From Chara braunii (Eukaryota > Plantae > Charophyceae), in NCBI GenBank assembly GCA_003427395.1, contig BFEA01000026.1:3020825-3080202 (forward strand): a DNA stretch of 59,378 nt. Reading direction: 5' to 3'. Below, piece by piece: positions 5,160 to 51,069 of this stretch (its first letter is position 1; every line of letters starts with the position of its first letter). The notes under the pieces were generated by a model. It had not been told where the DNA came from. It saw only the letters and a list, made by a program, of their open reading frames with translations, and did not search any database. Position numbers and translations under genes: made by a program.

Positions 5160-6515
5160 GAATTTCAGGGCAGAGTGAGGAATATGATCATTTGGCCAAT
5201 GGGATGGTAGAGCCCTCGTACAGAGGTCGAGGCTAAGTCAGATGCCATCATTGCCATTCTTCTACAGATCTTTTCTTAGCAGACAGCACCCTGCAGAACA
5301 TCAAATTCATTTTAGCAACGGCGTCCATTGGATCACCCATGATCTGATGGACAGAGCACAACATCGCTTTTTGCTTTCATGTCCGATGTCGGAAATGCAG
5401 TCGTACACCTGTCATGCCCACCGGCAACTGTAGAAACCACTTGCCAGTCACGGCGGGAACTGTCTCCTGAGGGGGCTTTAGGTTGCAGTTCAGAATCTTC
5501 ACGGCATTTGCTACAAAGGGCTGACTTTTGCCATGTGATTGCGGTCCTCTGATATTGCTACAAAGACCTAAAAAGTAACCGCTCTCTCCTATATGTGCGT
5601 ACTGTGGAATGACGCCTTCAAGGCATTGGGCTACCATATCATAGGGTGACATCTTATCGCAGGGTGTTGTTTGAGGGGACAATATCTTCAAGGCGAGGGC
5701 GGGTCAAGTGCCCGGTATTTTCATTATATCTATCTTGAGCCACCATTACTTCCAAGCCACGTTTTCCCAGGGCTCGAAACACTCTGCAAGCCCAAAAAAA
5801 CGGACGGCAAAGGCCTTTGTGTGCTGAAACCTTCTTTTCTCACTGATGGGACGTTGGTGTCAAAATAGGCACCCCATTCGGATGTAACTGCAGCAATTAA
5901 AAAAGAAAAGAAAGGGCTATATCTCGATCGGGAATCTGACAATAACTGATACATTTGGCACTAATATGGAAACTGCAGGCGCGACATTTGGGAATGAGGG
6001 CCCCAAAGACAAGGTGTGGGGCTGTGCCAGAAGTTTTCGTGTTGAGGATACGGGAGGCGCGGCATTTGGAACTATGGAAACTGCAGGCGCGACCCACTCC
6101 AGAACAATCCCCCACCTGCTCACGAGCGTAAAGAACACAACTTTGGCTTCCGGCAAGTAACGCAAGAGATAATAGACCTCAACGCCTAGCAGTTGGAGGT
6201 GTGAGGTCTCGTAGAGACTGGGTATTGAGGATATGGGAGGCTGAGTCGTGTTGAGCTGCTGAATGTCACTAAGGCAGTTTGGTTTCAGGCTGAAGGCTTC
6301 TATGGATAGAAGGCTTGAGTTTTTTTTCTATAGCTCCTCTGAGTCATGATTTTTGCTTGAATTTTGCTGAGAATTTCTAGTACTTGAATTCGTAGTCGAA
6401 ACCGGGTAATGGCCCCGGTAACTCATATGTTGTAAGATTCTGATGGGACGCTGGGCCTGGTTCCCAGCACGAATAGACTGGAGCAATTGTCCAAAAAAGA
6501 AAAAAAAGAAAAAAA
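5160..6515 (+). mobile_element. Decayed 5'-truncated LINE 3' end
   Basis: PLSPICAYCG at ~5580 resembles the zf-RVT segment of other copies. Shared 3' motif at 6445-6485 and an A-rich tail at 6493-6517. The 5' boundary is uncertain. Confidence 0.6.
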
Positions 6516-8279: not shown

Positions 8280-9629
8280 CAATGATCATCGTATGTGAGT
8301 GTGGAAGGATTAAGAGGATAGCACTATGAGGGAGTGCAATATCGAAGACCCTCTCACTTTTTGTACCTTTCTTCACCCTTCCTCTCTTCACTTGATATCA
8401 TCCTCTCCGCCTTCTTTTCTCCCAGCTTCACACCCTTATTCTCCTTGCCCTTCCCTCTCTCCACATTATCTGCCTTCTTCCTCTGATCACTATTTTCCCT
8501 CTGCTTTACTTTCTGCTGCTCTGTGATCCGGTAGGTGCTCATGTTTTCTTCATTTTACAATCCGGTAGGTGCTTGTCTCCCTTTTTTTTTTTTCTTCAAT
8601 CTATTTTCTTTAAACCTAATTGGAAACTCCTTTAAACTATTCTCCTAATCCCTACTTCTAATTAGTATCCTCCAAAACTAACTAATCAACATCCAATCAT
8701 CATCCATATCATCATCCTAATAACCAATCTACTCTTCCAACTACAGAAATATCCTAATCAAACATCCAATCATCATCCATATCATCCTAATAACCAATCT
8801 AAATAACATTCCGAATATTCCAGAATCATCGTAACTCTCAACGGTATTCCTTAATACCTAAATTCCTAAATTTTGAATCTCTGAATCTCCAAATCTGTAT
8901 CTGCACTCTTCATGTTTTTATTTTTGCTGCATTCGCTTCCATACTTGCTCTTTTCTAATTCTATTTCAGAAACCTGGTCTTTAAAATGTCTCCCGTGGAG
9001 ATTCCCTTGGTTTGAAATTCCAGGTTTTTTTTTGATAACCGTATTCTTGCTCTCTGTGCATTGACGTTTTTTCTTATGGATGGAAGGTTCACGTAACAGG
9101 GAACAGCTCCACTCTGCAGGGCCGATGCAAGGTGGAAAGTGAAGCCCTGGAGGGGTTGTGAGCAGATTTAGGGGGTTGCCATATTCTAGGGTTGGGGTGG
9201 GGGTACACATCCCAGGGGGGGCAGATTAGGGTAAAGGGTGGGCAGAGGCATACTTTGGGAGGGAACTGTATGCCTTTGCGGGATAGAGGGGGGGAATGTG
9301 GGTCTGTCCCAAGTTGGGGCTGAGATGGGCTGCCAGCAATCTGGGTAATCCGTTTCGGTGGAGGCAATGTTGGGATAGGATGGGAAAGGAGGGGGGGGGG
9401 GCAAGATTTCTTCAATCTTTGGTGTAACGTGCACTAAAGATCCATCAACATCTTCTTAATAAGGCTTTTTTTTTTCCCCCTGCTGGAAACCAGGTCCAGC
9501 GTCCCATTGATACATCTTTTTTGCTGAGAATCAGGCTGAGCGTCCTTTGGAAGTACATAGGTGAAAAAGAAAATGAGAAAATGAGAAAACCATGATCATA
9601 AGACAGTCCGAGAAAAGTCTCGTTGCACC

Positions 9630-17138: not shown

Positions 17139-20100
17139 TTTTTTTCTTTTTTTTTTTCTAAACAACCTGCTCTATCTATTGGTGGGGAACAACACCTGTT
17201 GGAAATCGGGTCCAATGTCCCTTAAATACACGAATGATATAAGAGAATGGTATGTCTGAACCATGGAGTTGGGTTGAGTTGTGCCTCTTCACCCCAATAG
17301 GGCGCCAGATTATACAAAATCATTCTAGCACTATTTATTTCTTATCCAATAATCCTTAAAAACATGAAAAGTCTAAATACTATCGTCTCCTATCTTTTAA
17401 TTTTATTCATACCCAAACCAAACCCTTGAGACTAGACTTAAAGCCGAGGGGGGAAAGAAATCTCGGAAATCTGATAGTGGTCGTAAAAGAATTGTTGGGT
17501 CGATCGTAGTCCAGTCATTAAAAGCAAGTTTATAATCTCAACTCATATTTTCCTCTCCACTTCTCTTTGCCCCTTCCCATTAAACCTTCCCCATCTTCCC
17601 TCCTTGGGCTCCTTCTAACCAGCATTGGTTGAATCGTTGAATGTGTTGCAGAATTTCGTTTCGCGAGGATAAAAATTATATTTTTTTTTTAGATTTTTCT
17701 CATTTTATATTTATACTCGTTTGTACTCATTGCTTAAGTATGTCAGTGAATTTTGGTCCATCTAGCCTAACCCCTTCCATTTCATACGTACATCTTCTTA
17801 ACCATATTGCCCATAATATCGTTATTCTGCCTATATTATACAAATTTTGTGAGAATTCATCAATACATTCAGGGGACCAGGTTTCAAGAAGGATGGCTCT
17901 CCAGTCCCATGACCACTGGACTTCTGTTTCCGAATTAGACTAAATACGACTCCACCACCTCCATAGCCAGATTGCCCCAGGACACTGTAAGAATATATGC
18001 TCGATTGTCTTAGGGATTAACTTAGAAGAAAACGCCACTTTACAAAATTTGCACTAGGGGAGCACTTTCCCTTTTTGTTCTAATGTCGACCTGTCAATTA
18101 ACCAGTCATTTATAGGTAGGCATCTATGTTCTATTTGTCATTGTAGTGAAGCCACCTTTGCAGGTTTAATTTTGGTCTTACTAAACCATTTTACCTTTCT
18201 TAATGATTCCTCATTAACATTGAGATGCTTCATCCATCTTTCCTCTATCTTGTCTTTCAATTTTTTTTTAGGGCGAAGCATCCTATAAGTGAATTTCATT
18301 AACAACGTGTAAAGAGCACAACATGTTTTTCCTTTGTTTTTTGTACTAGTCCACTTCCAATTTGCAGGATCAAGGGGCTGACAATTTATGGGTGTATTTG
18401 GTTTAAAAGTTATTCATTTATCTTTGTACCAAAATACTCTGATCCTGAATACTTGGTCTTTTGTCACTCTCCTTATACTATTCTGGTCCTTTATTATAAC
18501 TATTTGATTACTATTTATTTCATAGGTAGTGAGGAGTATTTCTCCATTCTCAAGAACTACTACAACACTACCTATGATGTTTGACTGATCATTCATAGCA
18601 ACCCAATCTCCTTCTTATAACTAAGGACCTTTTTTTAGAATTTTTATCTAATTCAAAAATATCAAGTCAATCAATTTTTATAAAGCTTTCTCAGAATGAT
18701 GACAATACCTAAGGTGGGTTTGTAACTGTGAAGGGGTAAACCAATCTCTTTCTTCACTGTTCTATATGTCTTTTATTCTTATAATATCATTTTCAACTCA
18801 TCCGTTCCAGGCGGAATCTGCGCAGTTAAGGACACAATCTTGGGGATCTTTGAGAAGATTATTATCAAAGAGTGGTTGTTGACATACCTCTTCCCATCTG
18901 CCAGGAGGGTTTTGGTCTGTTAATGGTAATTTCCTTCATGTTTTGACGAGGTTAGACCAAAACGAATCATTATGTAAATATATTATTGCCGCCTTTCTAT
19001 CTGATATACTTTGATCCATTGGTTCATTCACTAGCCCTCTCAGAATACTCCAAGACCTGTTTTCTAGCCACATCATTGGATCTATGTTGTCAGGTGTTTT
19101 TGGTGCAAGACGTCTGATTTGTTCCCATGCCAACACACTTCAAGAGGTTTGAGGATTAAAGAGTAAGCGTTTAATCCATTGAATTGATAGGGTCATAGCT
19201 TGTAAAGAGGGATCAATGATGTTCAACCCTCCTCTAACTTTAGGTTGTATCACTGATTGTCAAGCTACCTTGCTAATTACCTTATCAAGCTCATGATTTC
19301 CTCTCCATAAAAAGTCTAATAGTTGACATTGAAGGGTCTTTAAATTTTTCGTATCTAACGCCCATATTGTTGATTTATACCAGATTGAGGCTAAAACCAC
19401 ATTATTAATTACCAGAGTACGACCAAAGAGGAAAGTTTGTTTAACCTTCCCCATTTCACAGTTCTAACTTATCATATGCTTATTTGGCTATACAGTCATT
19501 ATTAGTTGATGATTTTCTTACCGTTGAAAGGAAAATCCATAATACCCTAATGGGAGTTTCTAAGGAAAACCATTTTACTTGGGGAATTTTATGGGGTCTT
19601 ACTCCGTGATGATGAATCCACCAACCCATAGTTTTATTTCCCCAATTTACCCTCATATCAGATAGTCTACAAAATTTATGCATCAAACTATTAATTGTTT
19701 CCATATTCATTTTAGATGCTTCTACCATCAGGGACAGATTGTCAGCAAAGAGAGAACAAACAGGAATGGCTTCCTCTGAAATTGATGACACTTGAATTCT
19801 TTTAATCTGTGTATTATCGTATTCGGGTTCGGTGACCGAACCCGAACATTCGAGACCGAACGCGAACAAACGCCGAAACTCTCAGAACGCGAACATAAAA
19901 AAAAAAAAAAAAAAAGTTCTCCAAAAAGGAAAGTTTGCTTACCCTTCCACAGTTCACAGTTCTAACTTAGTATATGCTTATTTGGCTATAATGTCATTGT
20001 TAGTTGATGATTTTCTTGCTCCTGAAAGATAAATCCCCAATACCCTAATGAGAGTTTCTAAGGAAAATCATTTTACTTGGGGAATTTCATGGGGTCTTAC

Positions 20101-31066: not shown

Positions 31067-33017
31067 GAGTCTCTTTAGATACTCCTAAAAATGTCAGTTT
31101 TTAAGAATGCATTGTGGTTAGAAGCTTCTTAAAAATGAAATCGTGAAGAAAAATGTGAAGACAACGTTTTTTATTTTATTTTTAAGAAGACATGCTCCAA
31201 TCTATTCGTGGGGAGCAGCACGTGCTGGGAATCGGGCCCAGCGTCCCATATGAAGACTTGTAGAAAAGATTTATGAACAAATTGAAGTACCGAGGCCATT
31301 ACTTGGTTTAGGTTTGAGAGTATCCTCCAAGATCATAAACAAGCTGCTGAAAATCGGGATAGATAATGAACAAAATTAAAAAAACTACGAATATAGATGA
31401 TGAGAAAAACTACGAATCATTTTTTACGATCACTAAACACCTCCTGAAGTCCACCCGCAATTCTCTGAACACTCAAGTATCTAAGGGAATTCCAGCAGAT
31501 CATATAACAAAGCTAAAAAAAAACGACTTATTCTCTGACAAACTCATCCAGACCTCACGCCCCCCATCCGCTAGGTTACAGAGCAACCCGACTCACTCTA
31601 GCTCCGACCAGTGTCGTCCTGTGTCCGCAACCCCAAGTTGTCCCTTAGGATGCCCCTGCATAGCATCCCCACATCTCTCTACAAGGCCTCATGCCCTCAC
31701 CTTCGCCAATTTACAGGGCATCACCCCGGCTTCGGCCAGCGTCGTTCTGGCATGGAACAACCACGGATCCTGAATATAATAGTCTAATTCCAGTGCAGCT
31801 TCGTATAAACCACCAACAGTCTCTCAGAGTCCTGAGAGATTCTTCAAACTACCAGGAAATAACAAGGGTGCTTGTTTTGAATATTCTAGAAGAATCAGAA
31901 AAGGTCCCAACCAAATTCAAGCAAAGGATATAGAAATTCCCCCATTTCCCCTCATCCCCCTGCCCCGAAGCTGTCTCAATGGAAAAGGACAGCCCCTGAT
32001 CACGAGCACTCCTCATCGCCCCCAACTTGGGACAGACCCATTTTCCCCCCTACTCCCACTAAAGGCATCCAGTTCCCACCCAAACTATGCCTCTGCCAAC
32101 CCCTTACCCTTATCTGCCTCCGCTGGGATATGATGTCGACCCATACATCTCCCCCAACCCCAAAATAGAGCATCCCCCAAAATCTGGCCCGTCTCCCTTC
32201 AGGACAATCACCTCCCTCCTTGTGAAGACCCTGCAGAGTAGAGTTTTCCCTCAACCCACCCCCTCACTAGAAGTAATTTGTTTACACTAAAGAGGAGAAC
32301 CAGAATTCCAGATTTTGCTGTAGATTATTTCCTCCCCTCCCCTACATCTCCGGCCCCAACTTGGGATATACCTGCCTCCTCCCCCTACTTCCACTAAGGC
32401 ACCAATTTCCACCCAAAGTATGCCTCAGCCACCCCCTCACCCCTATCGGTCTCCGCTGGGACATAATGCCAGCCCATACATCTCTCCCAGCCCCAGAATA
32501 GGGCAACCCCCAAAAATTTGCCCCCACTCCCTCCAGGGCATTTCACCCCCCACCTTGTGAAGCCCATGCGGAGTAGAGCTCTCCTCCTTAAAACCCCAAC
32601 CCTCCACCCAGACAGAAATAATTCATTAATGCGGCCGAAGGGGAAACAAAAATTAATACTGGAGAAAAAAAAAAAACGAGCCTCAAGAGTTTTAGGAACT
32701 CAAATTCCTAAGATATGAGTGGAAGAATAAGAAATTTATAAGAATTATGATGAATAAAGGTAGATGAGAGTTTTCTTTTTTTGGATTTGCTGATGACGAT
32801 GAACAGCATCCTGAAAATGATGATGATGACAACCAACTCACCTGCTGATGTGAAAGGCAAACAAGGCCTTGAAAAGTAGCATCTAATGATAACAAAACGA
32901 TGATGATGATAGTAATGATGAAAATGAAGATAGAATGATGTTGCCGATCATACTGAAGAACAGTACCAACAACGCCCTATGATTACAAATTGATGATGGT
33001 GATGATGATGATGATGT

Positions 33018-37269: not shown

Positions 37270-38046
37270 TTTTGAACAGCATTCCCATCCAAACTGATTC
37301 CAGAGACTATAGAACATATATTTCTGCAATGCCCTGGCTCTGTATGGCTATGGCGATGGTGGGACAGGATTTGGAACCAGTTAGAAACATCCCTCCCATG
37401 GCCATGGAACTGGAAAGCGCTCCTTCTGGAAACTTGGAATCCAATTCAAACAGATAACTTCACATCTAATCTATTCACAATTGGAAGAAGAGCAGTTATC
37501 TGGGCATTATGGACCCGCAGATGTACTTACGAAATGGAGGGCGCCCGTCTTGATGGTCCATTCAGGGCTGCGTTCAGGATGAGCCGCCAAGGAATTACCG
37601 TCTAAGCTTCAATGATTGGATCAATATTGACCCTACCATTCCAATGAGACCACTATCAGAATTCCCGGATCCTTTTCCCCCTGTTGGTCTGGCGTTGGTT
37701 CCCAGATCCTAGTATATGCCAGAATTAGAATAGCAACGCCAACTTTCTTCCAATTTTTATTGGGATCAAGCAAGTGCTAGGTGGTCAAGTACATATGGCG
37801 CCCGTACAGGGTGAAGAGGCACAAAATATCAATCTTTGTCTATCTTCCTACTCAAGATCATACGAACAAAAGGGACGCTGGGCCCGGTTCCCAGCATGAG
37901 CTGTACCTTTTCTGATATGATGTCAAGGGACGCTGGACCCGGTTTCCAGCAAGTGCAACTCCCCACCAATGGAAAGGAGCCGCTTTCCAGGTGTTAGCGG
38001 TGTCTGATCTTATCAGCATCACTAACACTTTAGGGGGGTCTGGTTG

Positions 38047-42809: not shown

Positions 42810-45313
42810 TTTCCCCTTCCATTTAAAAAATAAAAATAAAAAAAATCACGGTTGTTTGGGAACTTTGGGGTGTATAATTGGTCTTTGTGGACTGCTGATT
42901 CGTTGACTTCGTTTGTCGACGATTAGGGCAGCGCCGCACGGATACTCACTAGGTGGTATTGGCGCTCATCACAATCGCGATTTTCGAAGACTGGTGAAGC
43001 TCTGCTACCTTGTTGCCATTTGGCGGAGTTAATTAGAGGTATACAGACTGTAGAGTGTGAATTTTCTGAATGGTTGTTGTTTTTGCCCGTGGGTTGGGTG
43101 GTCCATCGCGTGGGTTGGGTTGCTGATTTGGAATTTTGTTGGGGTTGCTGATTGGAGGTGCATAGGGTATAGACCGTATAGATAGAGTTGGAACTTTGTG
43201 AATCATTTTGGAATCATTTTGTCCGTGGGTAATTAGGATTAGATCATTGCCAATCTTGTTTTTTTTTTTTTTTGTGCTTTTGGTTGGTGATTTGTTACCT
43301 GGCTTGGATTTCGCTAGATTAGGGTTGGTTAATAAGTTAATAATGGCGGTTTGGAGAAGGGGTGAATTAGGATTTCGCTCTCTTACATTAGGGAATAGTA
43401 TCCCACCTGTACAACAACCTGGGCCAAAAAAAAAGAAAAAAAAAAAAGAAAGAAGGAACGCGATTTCTGTTTTAGGGTTAGGACTGGGTTTGCTTGTCTA
43501 AGACTTGACCTTGTGGGGCTGCGGTAGAGATAGGTTTGGCTGAGAGGGCCTTGCTTAGCCCGTTTGGCCTCAGCAAATGATGTACGGGACATCGGGCCCA
43601 TTTCCCGGTTATATGATATATGCTTTGTAAAAAGGAAAAAGGAATAACCCAAGTCCACCTGGAGAGGGGTCCCACTAACCTGGCTTTATTCTCTTCAAGC
43701 TGTTGGGCGCGGTGATGTGCGGCTGAAAATGACAAACAGAGTGCGTGGGTTCTCACCCTGCTGCTGAAACAACAGGCTTTGCCGAGAAGATCTTTTTTCA
43801 AAAGACAAACAAAGGAGCCTATCCTGTTAGGACAACCATAGGGATGATAGGGTGCCGCTGCCAGGAATCACCGTGGGTCTGGTCGTTCGCCTCTACAACA
43901 CCCTAGGCTTTTCCAAAAAAAAGCGAAGGAATAAGGGCCTCGCGACACCACTGATACCAATGTCGAAACATCACGAAATTCGACAGAAAACCCCTCTTCG
44001 CCACACCGCATGTCCGAGTGAAGAACTCACGAGTAGTAAGCACAAAAGAGACAAACTGGGGTGAAGATAGGACAAGCGTTGGTGCGTTCTCTTTTTCGAC
44101 ATTCGGGCAAGAATTCGACATCCCATCCGAGGACNNNNNNNNNNNNNNNNNNNNNNNNNNNNNNNNNNNNNNNNNNNNNNNNNNNNNNNNNNNNNNNNNN
44201 NNNNNNNNNNNNNNNNNNNNNNNNNNNNNNNNNNNNNNNNNNNNNNNNNNNNNNNNNNNNNNNNNNNNNNNNNNNNNNNNNNNNNNNNNNNNNNNNNNNN
44301 NNNNNNNNNNNNNNNNNNNNNNNNNNNNNNNNNNNNNNNNNNNNNNNNNNNNNNNNNNNNNNNNNNNNNNNNNNNNNNNNNNNNNNNNNNNNNNNNNNNN
44401 NNNNNNNNNNNNNNNNNNNNNNNNNNNNNNNNNNNNNNNNNNNNNNNNNNNNNNNNNNNNNNNNNNNNNNNNNNNNNNNNNNNNNNNNNNNNNNNNNNNN
44501 NNNNNNNNNNNNNNNNNNNNNNNNNNNNNNNNNNNNNNNNNNNNNNNNNNNNNNNNNNNNNNNNNNNNNNNNNNNNNNNNNNNNNNNNNNNNNNNNNNNN
44601 NNNNNNNNNNNNNNNNNNNNNNNNNNNNNNNNNNNNNNNNNNNNNNNNNNNNNNNNNNNNNNNNNNNNNNNNNNNNNNNNNNNNNNNNNNNNNNNNNNNN
44701 NNNNNNNNNNNNNNNNNNNNNNNNNNNNNNNNNNNNNNNNNNNNNNNNNNNNNNNNNNNNNNNNNNNNNNNNNNNNNNNNNNNNNNNNNNNNNNNNNNNN
44801 NNNNNNNNNNNNNNNNNNNNNNNNNNNNNNNNNNNNNNNNNNNNNNNNNNNNNNNNNNNNNNNNNNNNNNNNNNNNNNNNNNNNNNNNNNNNNNNNNNNN
44901 NNNNNNNNNNNNNNNNNNNNNNNNNNNNNNNNNNNNNNNNNNNNNNNNNNNNNNNNNNNNNNNNNNNNNNNNNNNNNNNNNNNNNNNNNNNNNNNNNNNN
45001 NNNNNNNNNNNNNNNNNNNNNNNNNNNNNNNNNNNNNNNNNNNNNNNNNNNNNNNNNNNNNNNNNNNNNNNNNNNNNNNNNNNNNNNNNNNNNNNNNNNN
45101 NNNNNNNNNNNNNNNNNNNNNNNNAAACAAAATGTAACCTACAGAATCTTTCTTTTTTTTCTTCTTTTTTTTGTCCCTATGAATCTTCACAAACGGCATC
45201 CTTCTTTTTTTATTCTTTTTTCCCCCTTTTAATTAAAGACACCGCCTATCTAGTAGAGGGTGTGGTAAGAGCAGCTCCCCCTAGTAGATGGACAGGAGTT
45301 GGTTCTTTTTCCA

Positions 45314-45400
45314 ATATATGCGTGTCATCCTTGCACAGGGGTCATTTTGCTAATTACCCTTCTCCGTATCGTTCCAATTTTAACGGATGTCCCGAAGGAC
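45314..45400 (-). pseudogene. U6: U6 snRNA retrocopy 1 (3'-truncated, diverged)
   Basis: Minus strand reads GTCCTTCGGGACATCCGTTAAAATTGGAACGATACGGAGAAG(GGTA)ATTAGCA(AAA)TGACCCCTGTGCAAGGATGACACGCATA. Degenerate TSD TTGGTTCTTTTTCCA (45299) / TCGGTGCTTTCTCCA (45401). Confidence 0.93.
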
Positions 45401-45752
45401 TCGGTGCTTTCTCCATCTGCAGAGATGAAGTGGATATGAAGTTCATGCATACAATTCCTATTATGGAAGGAAATCACTGCAGCAGCCTGTTCGGTCTCCA
45501 TCTGGACACCTGAGGTGGATCTGGGATTCGTGCGTAGAATTCCTGATACGGAAAGAAAACAACGCAGTGAAGAGACGGCAAGACACTAAAAGGAGAGAAA
45601 GGGTAAACTGTGTCTGAGTCATATCACTCCCCTCATGCCCCACTTGAGGTTTTTTTTTTTTTTCTTTTTCCACTTGGGTTGGCACACTCCACAGGGAAGA
45701 GAGAAAATAAAAGAAAAAGAAAAAGAGCCTCCTTAGACACTGCAGTGCTCGG

Positions 45753-45910
45753 GGGCCAAGTCCCACTAGCAGCGTTGACCAACCTCAACGCCAGAATCTG
45801 GACGTGTTTGTGTGCAGTTCAGGAAACTCAACACCATTTCTGCACATGTCCGCAAAAGCGTCCAGATTCAGGCATTGAGGTAGCTCAACGCTGCTAGTGG
45901 GACTTAGCCC
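45753..45910. mobile_element. Harbinger-like MITE family C, copy 1
   Basis: TIR GGGCCAAGTCCCACTAGCAGCGTTGA / TCAACGCTGCTAGTGGGACTTAGCCC. Confidence 0.85.
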
Positions 45911-46325
45911 GGGGGACGTTATTCCAAGGATTTCGTCGCCGTTACACCTGTAAGTCCTAGGAGATGAAATTCAAAATCAAAATGTGAAAACAGTGCGAGG
46001 ACAAATCTTTGGGCTCCGCGGATTTCCCAGCCAAATCGTCCACAGCTCCAATGGGGGACAGGGGCAAAACAGGGTGCCGTTTCGGGCCCAGGTAGGGCCA
46101 GGCGTAAGAGTCCAAAATGTGTGTGATTTGGGATATCTTGTTCTAAACGTTGAAAACAATGGAGTCATGATAGACTCAGTGTGGACAGGCTTAGGCAGTG
46201 CGCGATAGAGAAAGTTATGTCTTTCTGCTATAGCCTATCGGAGCACAGACGCCCTGTTTTTTTTTTTTTTTTTTTTATATAAAAAACAGGGTGCACATAC
46301 ACACACATGCACAGAGTCTCTCAAA

Positions 46326-46405
46326 GAGGTCGTGTTTTTTAGCTCAGTTGGTAAGGCACAGAAGTTGCATTCAGGAGGTCGTGGGTTCAATCCCCATTGG
46401 CCTCA
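46326..46405 (+). pseudogene. tRNA-derived SINE head or tRNA pseudogene
   Basis: Acceptor GAGGTCG/TGGCCTC, A box TAGCTCAGTTGG, B box GGTTCAATCC. Extra T-run and broken anticodon arm. Confidence 0.8.
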
Positions 46406-47190
46406 CGTACGTGCCTGGGCAAGCTTGGTGTTCTACCAGCTAGAGATAACCCGTTGGCTCTCCAATCCAGCATTGGCAGGACCTTGGCCAAATATTGTTG
46501 GCTGCTATGCAGCAATGATATTCGCCATTAGACACCACTAATGTGGGGTTGGAGGGGGGTAGGGGGAGGTGCAAGTGACTGGCCAAAGATGCTCGGCACT
46601 AGCATCGCCGGTTTCCCCCGTCGGCAATGCCTGATCACCCTGCATCATCGTGATGAGGGGCTGATACAAGCCTTGCTCTCGCACCACTGCTGTGGTGCAA
46701 ACCTACCCCGTGGGCTGGGGAGAGTTCCAGGTTTGGTTGGTGTTCCCCCGTACTATACATAGAGTAGCAAGAGGATGAGATANAGGAAATAGTAACATCA
46801 TGGAGGTCCCATCCCCTCGCCTTCCACCATCATTCCGACACGGATCCTCAGCCTCCAAGGAGCCTCGCGAGGTCACTCGGAGCCCGAGAATCCGTGTTTC
46901 ACGGAGAGAGGGGAGGGCATGCACGGAGTGGTACGTTACAACCGAGAATCCGGATTGTAGTGGCACCCTATGGGCTGAAAGCCTGAAGCAAAACTGTTTT
47001 TTCCCTCTTTTTTTGTTTTTTTTCCCCCTGGCCAACTCTCCAAGGATAGGTCAGCCGCCACCGCCAAAATTCCAAAATTTCCCCCAGGATTCGTCCTCGG
47101 AGCCCGAGAACAGCCTGAGGATTGTCTCACTACGCCCAAAGACGAAGGAAAATCAAGGAACAAGAGTGATGTAACTGACACTAGAAAACC

Positions 47191-47346
47191 ATTTCTCGAT
47201 TTATGTGTGTCATCCTTGCGCAGGGGTCAGTTGTTAAAAAAAAATAAAAAAAAATAAAATAAAAAAAAATCTTCTCTTTGCGCAGGGGCCATGCTAATCT
47301 TCTCTTTCTCTGTATCGTTCCAATTTTAACGGATGTTCCGAATGAC
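47191..47346 (-). pseudogene. U6: U6 snRNA retrocopy 2 (full span, internally rearranged)
   Basis: Minus strand: U6 5' to GGCCCCTGCGCAA, then AGAGAAGATT plus a T-tract, then TGACCCCTGCGCAAGGATGACACACATAAATCGAGAAATGG. TSD ACACTA(G/C)AAAACC at 47178 and 47347. Confidence 0.95.
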
Positions 47347-47368
47347 ACACTACAAAACCCCATGAACA

Positions 47369-47401
47369 GGACATCTGTTAAAATTGGAAAGATACAGAGA
47401 A
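47369..47401 (+). pseudogene. U6: U6 snRNA 5' fragment (copy 3) fused to a LINE
   Basis: GGACATCTGTTAAAATTGGAAAGATACAGAGAA. Confidence 0.92.
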
Positions 47402-49062
47402 CAATCAACAGCGTAAATGGGCATATGAGCCTAACACCCCCATCAGCAAGCTGCCTTTTGGTCCTGCAGAATGGGAATGGAAGACTGGCAAGCAGACCCC
47501 TATATGGGAGTACACAGTCAAGGAGGGGTACGGGGCCATGCGCGTCACTCCACCGATAACAGAAGTGGTAAAGAACAGATGGGAAAGAGATTCCCCGCTC
47601 GCTCAACAAGACCTCACTGACCTGGCATGGTCCCGGTATTCCAATATCAAGCCAACGGCCCACCGAGCCCTTCAGTGGCAGATCCTCCACAGATGCCTCC
47701 CCACCCCCAACTGGATTGTCTCCCTCACCAATCTAGAGCAGTGTGGCATTCTCTCCCCGATTTGCTCCTACTGCGGGAAGTCCTCACCACCGGCGAGAGC
47801 AACGCTGGAGCACTGCCTACTGGCCTGCCCAATGGTGGCGCAATTATGGTGCTGGTGGGATTCGTTGTGGCACTACCTCACGGCCCAGCATCTCCCCTGG
47901 AGCCACCCACTCATATGACTGGGTGAACACTCTCCTCACCTCAAAAAATGGGATGCCTTTGCAGCAAATCTTTTCTCGTACATGAGACTTGCTCTACTGA
48001 TGCTGGCCTGGAGGATGCTGTGCTCCCATGAAAGGGATAAGTGTTTCTTTGGCTTCCTACAAGCGCGGGAGGTGGTGATTGCAACAATCACCAACCATAC
48101 CCAAGCGGCCTGGAAACAGCTCAAAAAAGACCTTGCAGATATGAAAGACCAGACTGAGAGAGAACAGTGCAAAGATATGTTTGAATCCATATGGCTGGAT
48201 CAAATAGAAAGCTGGCGAAACTGGATGACCAGGAAAACTTAGTCTGGAATAGGTGGGCGGCAGAAGAACAGACATGGGAAAGACTCCCTCGGTCTCACTT
48301 TACAGTTCCTCACCAAGAACAAAACTTTCTTCTGCTCCCCCCCCAGCACCCTCCCCCGCCTACCGTCCCCAATCTTTGACAGCACCCCGCTCCCCCCACC
48401 CCTCTTCCCTGCTCCTCTCCCGCCTCTTGACCTCCGTCTAGCCCCTCCACCCGGGTGAGTCATGCCCCGTCAGGTCAAATGAGATAATCTGAATACAGGG
48501 TAATAGCGTCTGAACGAGCTCGGGGGCATGCGGCAAGAATACTAGGGATACGGATGTCAGGCTTAGAATGTATGAAGAGACTGAACGGAAAGGGTAGAAA
48601 GCATGGGGATAGCAGGGGCAAAAGACTGCCTGGNTAGAATGAGGGGTAAAAGTACACAGCGGGGGATAGTAGGGAATGGGGTGTGCGTATGGGACCGGCC
48701 GGCTCTGGCCAGTCGGGTCTGGGGAAACACTGCTCATAAGATCTAAACAGGCCGGGGGGTATCAGAATTGAGGATTTGGTCAGAGGTTCTAAAAGGGTTN
48801 ACGGTCTAGAAGGTCATACAGAGCAGACTGGTAAGGTGGTGTCGCAACCGGGCTTATCCCCCGGCAATAGGAAGCAGACNCGTNTGAACAAGTACGTACG
48901 TGCTACTGTCAAAATTTCAAACTTTCATAAAATGTAACAAGGGACGCTGGACCCGCTTTCCAGCAGGTGCTGCTCCCCACCAATAGATGGAGCCATCCAA
49001 AACGGGGTCTGCTAATGGACGATGCTCCTATCACCTTCATTAGCATGATCTTCGACTCAACG

Positions 49063-49111
<49 letters not shown>

Positions 49112-49140
49112 TAAGCATGATTAAAAATAAAAATAAAAAA
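47402..49140 (+). mobile_element. 5'-truncated LINE, the 3' partner of the U6 chimera
   Basis: LPFGPAEWEW..IWEYTVKEGY..RALQWQILHRCLPT..ICSYCG..LEHCLLACP. 3' motif at 48941-48993, poly(A) at 49068-49109. Confidence 0.95.
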
Positions 49141-49153
49141 ATCCCATGAACAG

Positions 49154-49320
49154 GGCCGAGGTCCCACTAGCAAAGAGGATGGGATCGAATGCCTGAATCT
49201 GGGATGTGTTTTATGCCGAGATGCAGAAAAACAGTTCAATCTCGATTTCCTGCACCTCTCCACAAACAAGTCCACATTCAGGCATTCGATCCGATCCTCT
49301 TTGCTAGTGGGACCACGCCC
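49154..49320. mobile_element. Harbinger-like MITE family C, copy 2, TSD CAG
   Basis: About 45-bp TIR GGCCGAGGTCCCACTAGCAAAGAGGAT... CAG at 49151-49153 and 49321-49323. Confidence 0.9.
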
Positions 49321-49385
49321 CAGGACTGCCATCGAATCTCCTTTTCTTCTTCTGCCCGGCAAAATAATTCAAGCTTTCCCACTTC

Positions 49386-49573
49386 TTTTCTTTTCTTTTT
49401 CTTTTTTTTGTGAAAAAGGGGGATGGCCTTGAGATATTATCATTGACCTGACCGGCCCCAAACAATTCATTAGTAGTTGGTTTGTATTCATCAAGTTCCA
49501 TCATCTGGATTCGAACACAGGTCTGTATTTCAACAGTTCATGGGTGTACCCACTGAGCTACGCTCTTGGGTAC
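49386..49573 (-). mobile_element. tRNA-derived SINE
   Basis: Minus strand has A box TAGCTCAGTGG, B box GTTCGAATCC and an A-rich tail. TSD TCAAGCTTTCCCACTTC (49369) / TCGAGCTTTTCCACTTC (49574). Confidence 0.85.
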
Positions 49574-50535
49574 TCGAGCTTTTCCACTTCCAAGTGCCAA
49601 AAAAAAAAAAAAAAAAAAAAAGTGCCAACCAATGACAATCATAACACATAGCGGAGGTGGGGTCGGGGAGATTCGTGAGAAGTTGGTCTCAGAGATGGAA
49701 AAAAGAAGCGAGCTGCGCTAACGAGAGCGCCTGACGAGCCGCCCGGCGGGGCCCGGTCGTGCCTCGGTCAGACTAGGGTTCGGCGCGTGGGCGTCGGCGA
49801 CGGCGTCAACAACGTTGACGAAGTGAGGGCCGTCCAACTGACCACCATAGCCTACGTACTTCGGGCGACAGGAAGGAAGACCTGGTGGGTCGTGTCAGGA
49901 AGGACGGGCGACTCTTGCAGTGCAGCAGAGCAAAGGACGAAGAGACCCATGGAGGACGACAGTCAAACGAGGAAGCTGACGAAGGGGCAGGCCGTAGCCG
50001 ATGTAAAGGGAAACGGGGAAGCGGGGCCAATGAAAGCAGTTAGCGCACTCTGAAGCGGAGATGCTGGGAAAGAGAAGTCGGGGAAATGAAGGCGGAATAA
50101 GGGGAGGGCCAGAGAGAGAGGAGGCAGAGCCATGAGTGCCTCGTGAGTGGGAGACAGACGAATTTCGAGGACGGTGGAACAAAGAGGCGAAGTATCAGAA
50201 GAGTTGGACAGGAGACATACGGAGAACAATCCGAATGGAGTAAAAGGATAAGACGAGGAGTTCGCCGCAGAGGGGGCGGGCTAAAGGAGCAAGGATCACA
50301 ACCGTGGAAGACCCGACCAACGAGTGTTTACAGTGTCATCACAAGGAAGGCGAGTGGGAGGGGCCCCCCTGTGCCCCTCCTCGGTAAGCCCGGCTGGCCA
50401 GTCCTTCCTGCGCTCAGTCCCCCTGGCATCCCTCCCGCTAGACCTTGCCAACCCCCCCGCCATCCCCCCCCTTGAACCTTGCCGCCCCATCCCCACCCCT
50501 TATTCCTCATTGGCAAATCCCTTTAAGGCTTTGAC

Positions 50536-51069
50536 GACTCTCCCTCACCTGTGACTCTCCCTCCCGTAGACTCCCCAAGTCTCCCCTCATCGTCAGTCAT
50601 CATCAGTCACGGGGTCGTGCTCACACTCGGGCCTTTGCCTGCAGGGTGTCAGTGACTCTCCCTCACCTGTGACTCTCCCTCCCGTAGACTCCCCAAGTCT
50701 CCCCTCATCGTCAGTCATCGTCAGTCACGGGGTCGTGCTCACACTCGGACCTTTGTCCGCAGGGTGTCAGTGACTCTCCCTCACCTGTGACTCTCCCTCC
50801 CGTAGACTCCCCAAGTCTCCCCTCATCGTCAGTCATCGTCAGTCACGGGGTCGTGCTCACACTCGGACCTTTGTCCGCAGGGTGTCAGTGAGACCGCTTT
50901 ACTGTCACCACGTGTACATTCCTCATTGGTATATCCCTTTAAGGCTTTGATGACTCTCCCTCACCTGTGACTCTCCCTCCCGTAGACTCCCCAAGTCTCC
51001 CCTCATCGTCAGTCATCGTCAGTCACGGAGTCGTGCTCACCCTCGGACCTTTGTCCGCAGGGTGTCAGT
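50536..51069 (+). promoter_or_regulatory. 118-bp 5'UTR monomer array, four copies
   Basis: Near-identical units start at 50536, 50654, 50772 and 50952. A promoter role is inferred from rodent L1 monomers. Confidence 0.75.

Follow-up and report, generated by a model that had tools for sequence, protein, structure and literature searches.

A 5'-truncated LINE flanked by colinear U6 pieces in the charophyte alga Chara braunii

Chimeras of U6 and LINE sequence are a classic read-out of how the LINE reverse transcriptase chooses and switches its templates. Buzdin reportedly described mammalian U6/L1 chimeric retropseudogenes in 2002, and, to our knowledge, the U6/LINE chimeras described so far come from mammals and a few other vertebrates. 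The locus studied here lies in a window of 59,378 nucleotides from Chara braunii (the whole stretch of DNA analysed, on contig BFEA01000026.1), and it raises the question of whether a 5' piece of U6 that runs directly into a LINE is such a fusion, made at the catalytic ACAGAGA box, or a product of another kind. A sequence-only reading of the window had taken it for a fusion reached by a route different from the mammalian one, either through a LINE inserted inside U6 and then re-mobilised, or through an internal template switch.

From left to right, the unit consists of a target-site duplication, a 5' part of U6, a LINE with an A42 tail, a short U6 stub, ATT with a second A tail, and the other copy of the duplication. 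Since U6 is resumed by the 10 nucleotides after A42 at the point where the 5' piece ends, the LINE splits U6 rather than being fused to it. The claim that U6 is simply cut off at ACAGAGAA and joined to the LINE thus has to be given up, as U6 resumes past A42 with nine of ten bases matching in register. A LINE with a short U6 retrocopy continuing colinearly on either side is a better description of the unit than a fusion at the catalytic box, and the charophyte case, in which U6 breaks internally and is taken up again beyond the LINE, represents a different product.

The flanking duplication and the later MITE

The left copy of the target-site duplication, 19 nt long, was found by repeat search at 47354-47372 (+ strand). 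The right copy (+ strand) is in two parts, with its first 16 nt at 49138-49153 (repeat search and alignment) and its last 3 nt, GAC, at 49324-49326 (alignment). With the intervening MITE taken out, the two copies match at 18 of 19 positions, and alignment thereby reproduces what had been claimed for the flanking repeats after removal of a later MITE with a CAG duplication. In a random control using pairs of 60-nt windows placed 1.8 kb apart, a 16-mer repeat with at most one mismatch occurred in only 3 of 3,000 window pairs. A single duplication pair encloses U6 and the LINE together, which bears out the sequence-only reading on this point. The first nick implied for the outer unit is on the bottom strand, after TTTT. 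The sequence GGAC, which forms the first 4 nt of the U6 piece, is also the end of the left duplication, and this microhomology between target and U6 is as had been proposed.

The MITE and its second CAG copy occupy 49154-49323 (unstranded). The body of the element (49154-49320) has 50-nt inverted ends that are 92% complementary, and CAG stands at both sides, the second copy being at 49321-49323. A second member of the family is present at about 45753-45912, where a 3-bp duplication fits too. The two members have inverted ends of about 45-50 nt (GGCC..GTCCCACTAGC) and 3-bp duplications (CAG, GGG).

DNA runs from the same organism contain 41-50% of the sampled words of 47150-49400, a figure that speaks to presence only and does not address the junctions. 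The assembly is imperfect in this part of the window, having single Ns at 48634, 48800, 48880 and 48884, all within the 3' UTR of the LINE, and an N gap at 44900-45124, upstream of the U6 copy here called A.

The LINE and the two parts of U6

The segment at 47402-49067 (+ strand, 1,666 bp) comprises the C-terminal part of an ORF2, an 825-nt 3' UTR and a 3' motif, and is followed by an uninterrupted A42 tail that can be read directly at 49068-49109 (+ strand). The ORF2 C-terminal frame extends over 47403-48242 with one internal stop at 47916, and its first 171 residues match zf-RVT with an E-value of 1e-4 and a score of 23.3 bits, below the Pfam cut-off of 27.5. An exhaustive HMMER search returned 13 relatives, the best with 52% identity, and one of the relatives is a 1,619-aa protein with RVT_1 whose C-terminal region aligns to the query. 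Near the 3' end, a motif of about 55 nt (48938-48994) recurs in at least four further elements of the window that end in poly(A), and such motifs near 3' ends are probably a shared LINE/SINE 3' recognition tail. Because zf-RVT, the RVT_1 relative, the common 3' motif and A42 agree, we assign 47402-49067 from its sequence to the 3' part of a 5'-truncated LINE.

The motif was also seen at 37924-37981, 17169-17223, 31194-31247, 9479-9518 and about 6440-6492, and its predicted hairpin is weakly better than those of shuffled sequences (z -1.7). Both pure runs of A20 to A42 and patterned tails are present among the tails of the window. No second copy of the LINE family was found in the window or by word search, and an exact look-up of the ORFs of the window gave no match. 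The contig of the best HMMER relative has about 65% DNA identity to the LINE, and no U6 was found near the LINE relative on that contig.

Directly upstream of the LINE start at 47402 is the U6 5' part, 33 nt in sense orientation (47369-47401, + strand), identified through a partial cmscan match and an inverted match to the neighbouring U6 copy B. The sequence-only reading was thus correct that a U6 5' piece ending ACAGAGAA directly joins about 1.7 kb of LINE, and also that the junction is internal to U6, in contrast to mammalian U6/L1 chimeras, which are joined at the U6 3' end. When cmscan was run on 47349-47480, it reported a partial + strand U6 at 47356-47401 (model positions 1-46 of 105, 22.5 bits, E 6e-4), of which the convincing portion is 47369-47401, or about model positions 14-46 of 105. 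This portion matches copy B at 29 of 31 positions and copy A at 30 of 33; it is without the first ~10 nt of U6 and stops within the catalytic region.

Beyond A42, the 10-nt stub at 49110-49119 (+ strand) begins at exactly the next U6 base after ACAGAGAA and matches U6 with a single mismatch (9/10), for which the naive chance of a match in exact register is about 3e-5. When the two U6 pieces are joined and aligned, they are colinear with copies A and B and no U6 base is lost or gained, the only gaps being private insertions of 4 nt in A and 6 nt in B. The stub is followed by ATT and the T-interrupted A tail of the outer unit (49120-49141, + strand), whose last AAAA overlaps the right duplication. 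This second A tail (49123-49141) adjoins the right duplication, whereas A42 does not reach it: the 28 nt between them (49110-49137) are made up of the U6-like 10-mer, ATT and most of the second A tail. At the inner LINE junctions no repeat was found beyond an ambiguous AA, and the inner LINE is therefore without a target-site duplication of its own. A 7-nt duplication, AAAGATA, was considered for it and rejected, as it would require a 10-nt deletion of U6.

The stub might also have come from the LINE, whose own 3' end contains an 11-mer (49038-49048) that matches the piece after A42 at 10 of 11 positions, as well as a 9-mer identical to the U6 stretch of the stub. This 9-mer is not above chance, since an equal or higher score was obtained in 26 of 500 shuffles of the 168-nt 3' end, and 72 of 200 shuffles of the whole LINE match U6 at least as well. 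When the base at the start, the register and both additional matches are weighed, the stub would be a continuation of U6 rather than LINE-derived at a likelihood ratio that we roughly estimate at about 7:1. An origin of the 13-mer after A42 from a SINE tail was discarded, its matches being only gapped and weak. A related LINE tail at about 38010-38025 has a similar U6-like motif in the same place, so that two related LINE 3' ends have such a motif some 20-30 nt ahead of the poly(A); this may be chance (p ~0.05).

Neighbouring U6 copies and rival routes

Three U6-derived sequences, the split copy C and two others, are found within 4 kb, and the surrounding patch is repeat-rich. Copy A (45294-45400, - strand; Rfam U6, gathering threshold, 60 bits) carries a 4-nt insertion that lies 1 nt from the position of the LINE break, and with this insertion it resembles the 5' splice-site consensus (AG/GTAAT). 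Retrocopy B (47189-47342, - strand; Rfam U6, gathering threshold, 56 bits at 47246-47348), the 3' half of which we take to resemble plant U6, is flanked by a 13-nt duplication on the left that can be read directly (47176-47188, + strand) and by a right copy at 47343-47357 (+ strand) that matches it at 12 of 13 positions with a 2-nt indel. The duplications of B and of the U6-LINE-U6 unit have one AAAA in common, the last of the former and the first of the latter, and two retro-insertions used one A4/T4 tract on opposite strands. At the priming end of B, AAAA is complementary to the oligo-U 3' end of U6. The body of B has a 6-nt tandem duplication at the very U6 position of the LINE break, and it is broken by a 45-nt insert of GTTGTT plus A-rich sequence (47230-47274) between 17-nt flanking repeats (47213-47229 and 47275-47291, 15/17). 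This insert resembles a very short LINE tail, and the break is directly after GCGCAA; the 12-mer at 47268-47279 is an exact repeat of 47296-47307. A remnant of Dada-U6 was considered as the source of the insert and rejected: although the Dada site (GCGCAA) is where B is broken, the flanking repeat measures 17 nt rather than 6-7, and the arrangement of the sub-terminal repeats differs from that in Dada.

We tentatively favour a history of two steps at this locus, in which the LINE inserted into a resident short U6 retrocopy, a possible reading that stops short of being probable. In a first step, the LINE machinery would have nicked the bottom strand after TTTT (47353/47354) and retrocopied an internal segment of U6 that starts at the foot of the 5' stem-loop and ends shortly beyond the AGC triad, together with a short A-rich tail, and the cDNA would have joined the target through the GGAC microhomology to give the 19-bp duplication. 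Later, a 5'-truncated LINE with a long poly(A) would have entered this U6 piece between ACAGAGAA and the next G, with a duplication of its own that was absent or no longer than 2 nt, and the MITE would have come last, into the right duplication. We infer this order of events, and the two-step route itself, from the continuation of U6 after A42 in exact register, the colinearity of the joined pieces with A and B, and the two tails, of which the inner A42 is pure and the outer one, at the right duplication, is interrupted by T. A pure inner tail beside a decayed outer tail suggests that the LINE is the younger arrival, and mildly favours this reading. For the outer unit, both the 19-bp duplication (18/19) and the nick site at TTTT agree with ordinary insertion by LINE machinery, and tiny LINE-mediated insertions are present here (retrocopy B with its 13-nt duplication, and the A-tailed 45-nt insert in B with its 17-nt repeats), while snRNA retrocopies truncated in single-stranded purine-rich segments are documented (PMC4476161). 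However, the inner LINE is without a duplication, whereas three other LINE-type events in the patch have duplications of 13-19 bp; a random insertion would coincide with the position altered in A and B only about once in 20-50 cases; and the 10/11 match of the LINE 3' 11-mer means that the apparent U6 continuation could be LINE-derived. The duplication-less LINE would be accounted for, together with the one duplication that encloses everything, if a composite U6-LINE-U6 RNA had been reverse-transcribed once as a single unit, which we consider unlikely, though a reading to be taken seriously. Its source could be a transcript of a LINE within a U6 copy elsewhere, as in the re-mobilised route of the sequence-only reading, or the composite could form at the RNA/cDNA level through template jumps out of U6 and back. 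The short stub after A42 would then resemble a short 3' transduction, and the divergence of copy C from the U6 sequence common to the other copies (3 of 39 positions) exceeds that between the duplication copies (1 of 19), a point in favour of a single unit. Nevertheless, the source locus would need the same insertion of a LINE without duplication, plus mobilisation of a dead 1.7-kb LINE fragment; the T4 run at 47456 would end a Pol III transcript started at a U6 promoter; template jumps seldom re-enter at the adjacent nucleotide; and a joint arrival of the two tails would make it odd that A42 is pure and the outer one interrupted by T. Compared with a re-mobilised composite, U6 first and the LINE later is the simpler alternative.

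A true chimera of a U6 5' part and a LINE, which we regard as rather doubtful, would have formed if, in the course of target-primed reverse transcription, the enzyme had left the LINE RNA for a single-stranded site within U6 RNA. In that case the 13 nt after A42 would be a LINE/SINE 3' scrap from an earlier template, making the chimera tripartite, and the 10/11 match of this piece to the LINE sub-terminal motif, along with a similar motif in the related tail at about 38010, would agree with such an origin. Both elements of this route have precedents, in multi-partite chimeras made via double template jumps (PMC2104539) and in internal initiation on purine-rich single-stranded snRNA segments (PMC4476161). 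On the other hand, the base directly after A42 agrees with U6 but not with the LINE motif, the register is that of the next U6 base, and the rough likelihood ratio given above is for a U6 continuation; moreover, the first template would be an RNA fragment of only 13 nt, and the acceptor site is internal in U6 rather than at a 3' end. The probability beyond these three main readings covers explanations that we have not considered and a templated filler, in which snap-back synthesis of the top-strand overhang, during the joining of the LINE 5' end, would have copied B (47306-47336, 34 nt away) as DNA, in inverted form, to give the + strand U6 piece. The inverted repeat (29/31, with a 34-nt spacer) and the start of the U6 piece at the AC of the target GGAC are in keeping with a filler, which would also account for a U6 piece 5 bp from an opposite-strand U6 copy, but it leaves the U6 continuation after A42 and the second A tail unexplained, the 6-nt duplication of B is absent from the piece, and B and the unit each have their own duplication with one AAAA in common, which fits two retro-insertions at a nick-prone site; we consider a filler very improbable. 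Of the two routes in the sequence-only reading, then, a LINE inserted inside U6 fits better, because U6 resumes beyond A42 in register, and an internal template switch fits less well. The locus is most likely a by-product of retrotransposition and not a new route of U6-to-LINE fusion; for a single locus, debris of nested retrotransposition is the most economical reading.

Relation to known systems and the question of a hot spot

In mammalian U6/L1 chimeras, U6 is predominantly full length and joined via its 3' end, and in one reported route the U6 RNA is ligated to LINE-1 before reverse transcription (Law & Burns 2025, PMC11838501; Doucet 2015, PMC4476161). The unit described here is like them in that a 5'-truncated LINE directly follows a sense U6, one duplication encloses both, the nick site is T-rich and the 5' junction shows microhomology. 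Unlike in the mammalian cases, however, U6 is neither full length nor joined through its 3' end, the LINE poly(A) does not adjoin the 3' duplication, with U6 resuming after it, and the host is a charophyte alga. A further parallel, for the U6 part, is found in the 3'-truncated ("tailless") snRNA retropseudogenes, whose breaks are in single-stranded purine-rich segments (Doucet 2015, PMC4476161). Likewise, U6 is truncated here in such a segment, with a duplication and an L1-like nick site, but the truncated U6 has an A-rich tail, is also truncated at the 5' end and is interrupted by a LINE. The position of the break at the catalytic box may have no other basis than the long purine-rich, single-stranded portion of U6, in which snRNA retrocopies are known to break (PMC4476161).

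Elements that target snRNA genes include Keno and Utopia, which are found in U2, as well as Dada-U1 and Dada-U6 (PMC4640811, PMC3706591), the last of which inserts at U6 positions 65-70 in animals (PMC3706591, PMC4640811). As with Keno, Utopia and Dada-U6, the element studied here is precisely inside the snRNA sequence, with no snRNA base lost or gained. In contrast to Dada-U6, the site is between the ACAGAGA box and the AGC triad rather than at 65-70, and the element is a LINE with poly(A) rather than a DDE transposon. Moreover, a single copy with one precise 3' junction was seen here, and one case does not show specificity. As of PMC4640811, no report existed of a non-LTR element that targets U6, and our literature searches found none either. 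LINE template jumps are known to make bi- and tripartite chimeric retrogenes, as with MINE of Magnaporthe (PMC2104539), and these resemble the present unit in that several RNA-derived pieces are arranged head to tail within one duplication pair; unlike it, they join 3'-terminal parts of different RNAs without a return to the adjacent base of the same RNA.

The LINE break in copy C is within 1 nt of the lesions in copies A (the 4-nt insertion) and B (the 6-nt duplication). It is conceivable, though we think it improbable, that a specific cause makes the U6 bond lying between the ACAGAGA box and the AGC triad a genuine hot spot. The U6 RNA might be broken or rejoined there, with LINE RNA joined into the U6 catalytic core and the event kept as a cDNA record; U6 halves, arrest of the reverse transcriptase at a modified base, or aberrant spliceosomal transesterification might be the cause. 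The last of these would be akin to the reverse splicing proposed for fungal U6 introns. Alternatively, the LINE might nick U6 DNA site-specifically, and if so, it would be the first U6-targeting non-LTR element. If breaks at this bond were found genome-wide, they would point to a property of U6 RNA near the catalytic centre, a pause site of the reverse transcriptase, or an element that targets U6.

ARAGORN reported no tRNA in 44000-51000. Within the same region, the sequences at 46335-46400 and 49500-49621 resemble tRNA-derived SINE heads, and the second of them is followed by an A23 tail.
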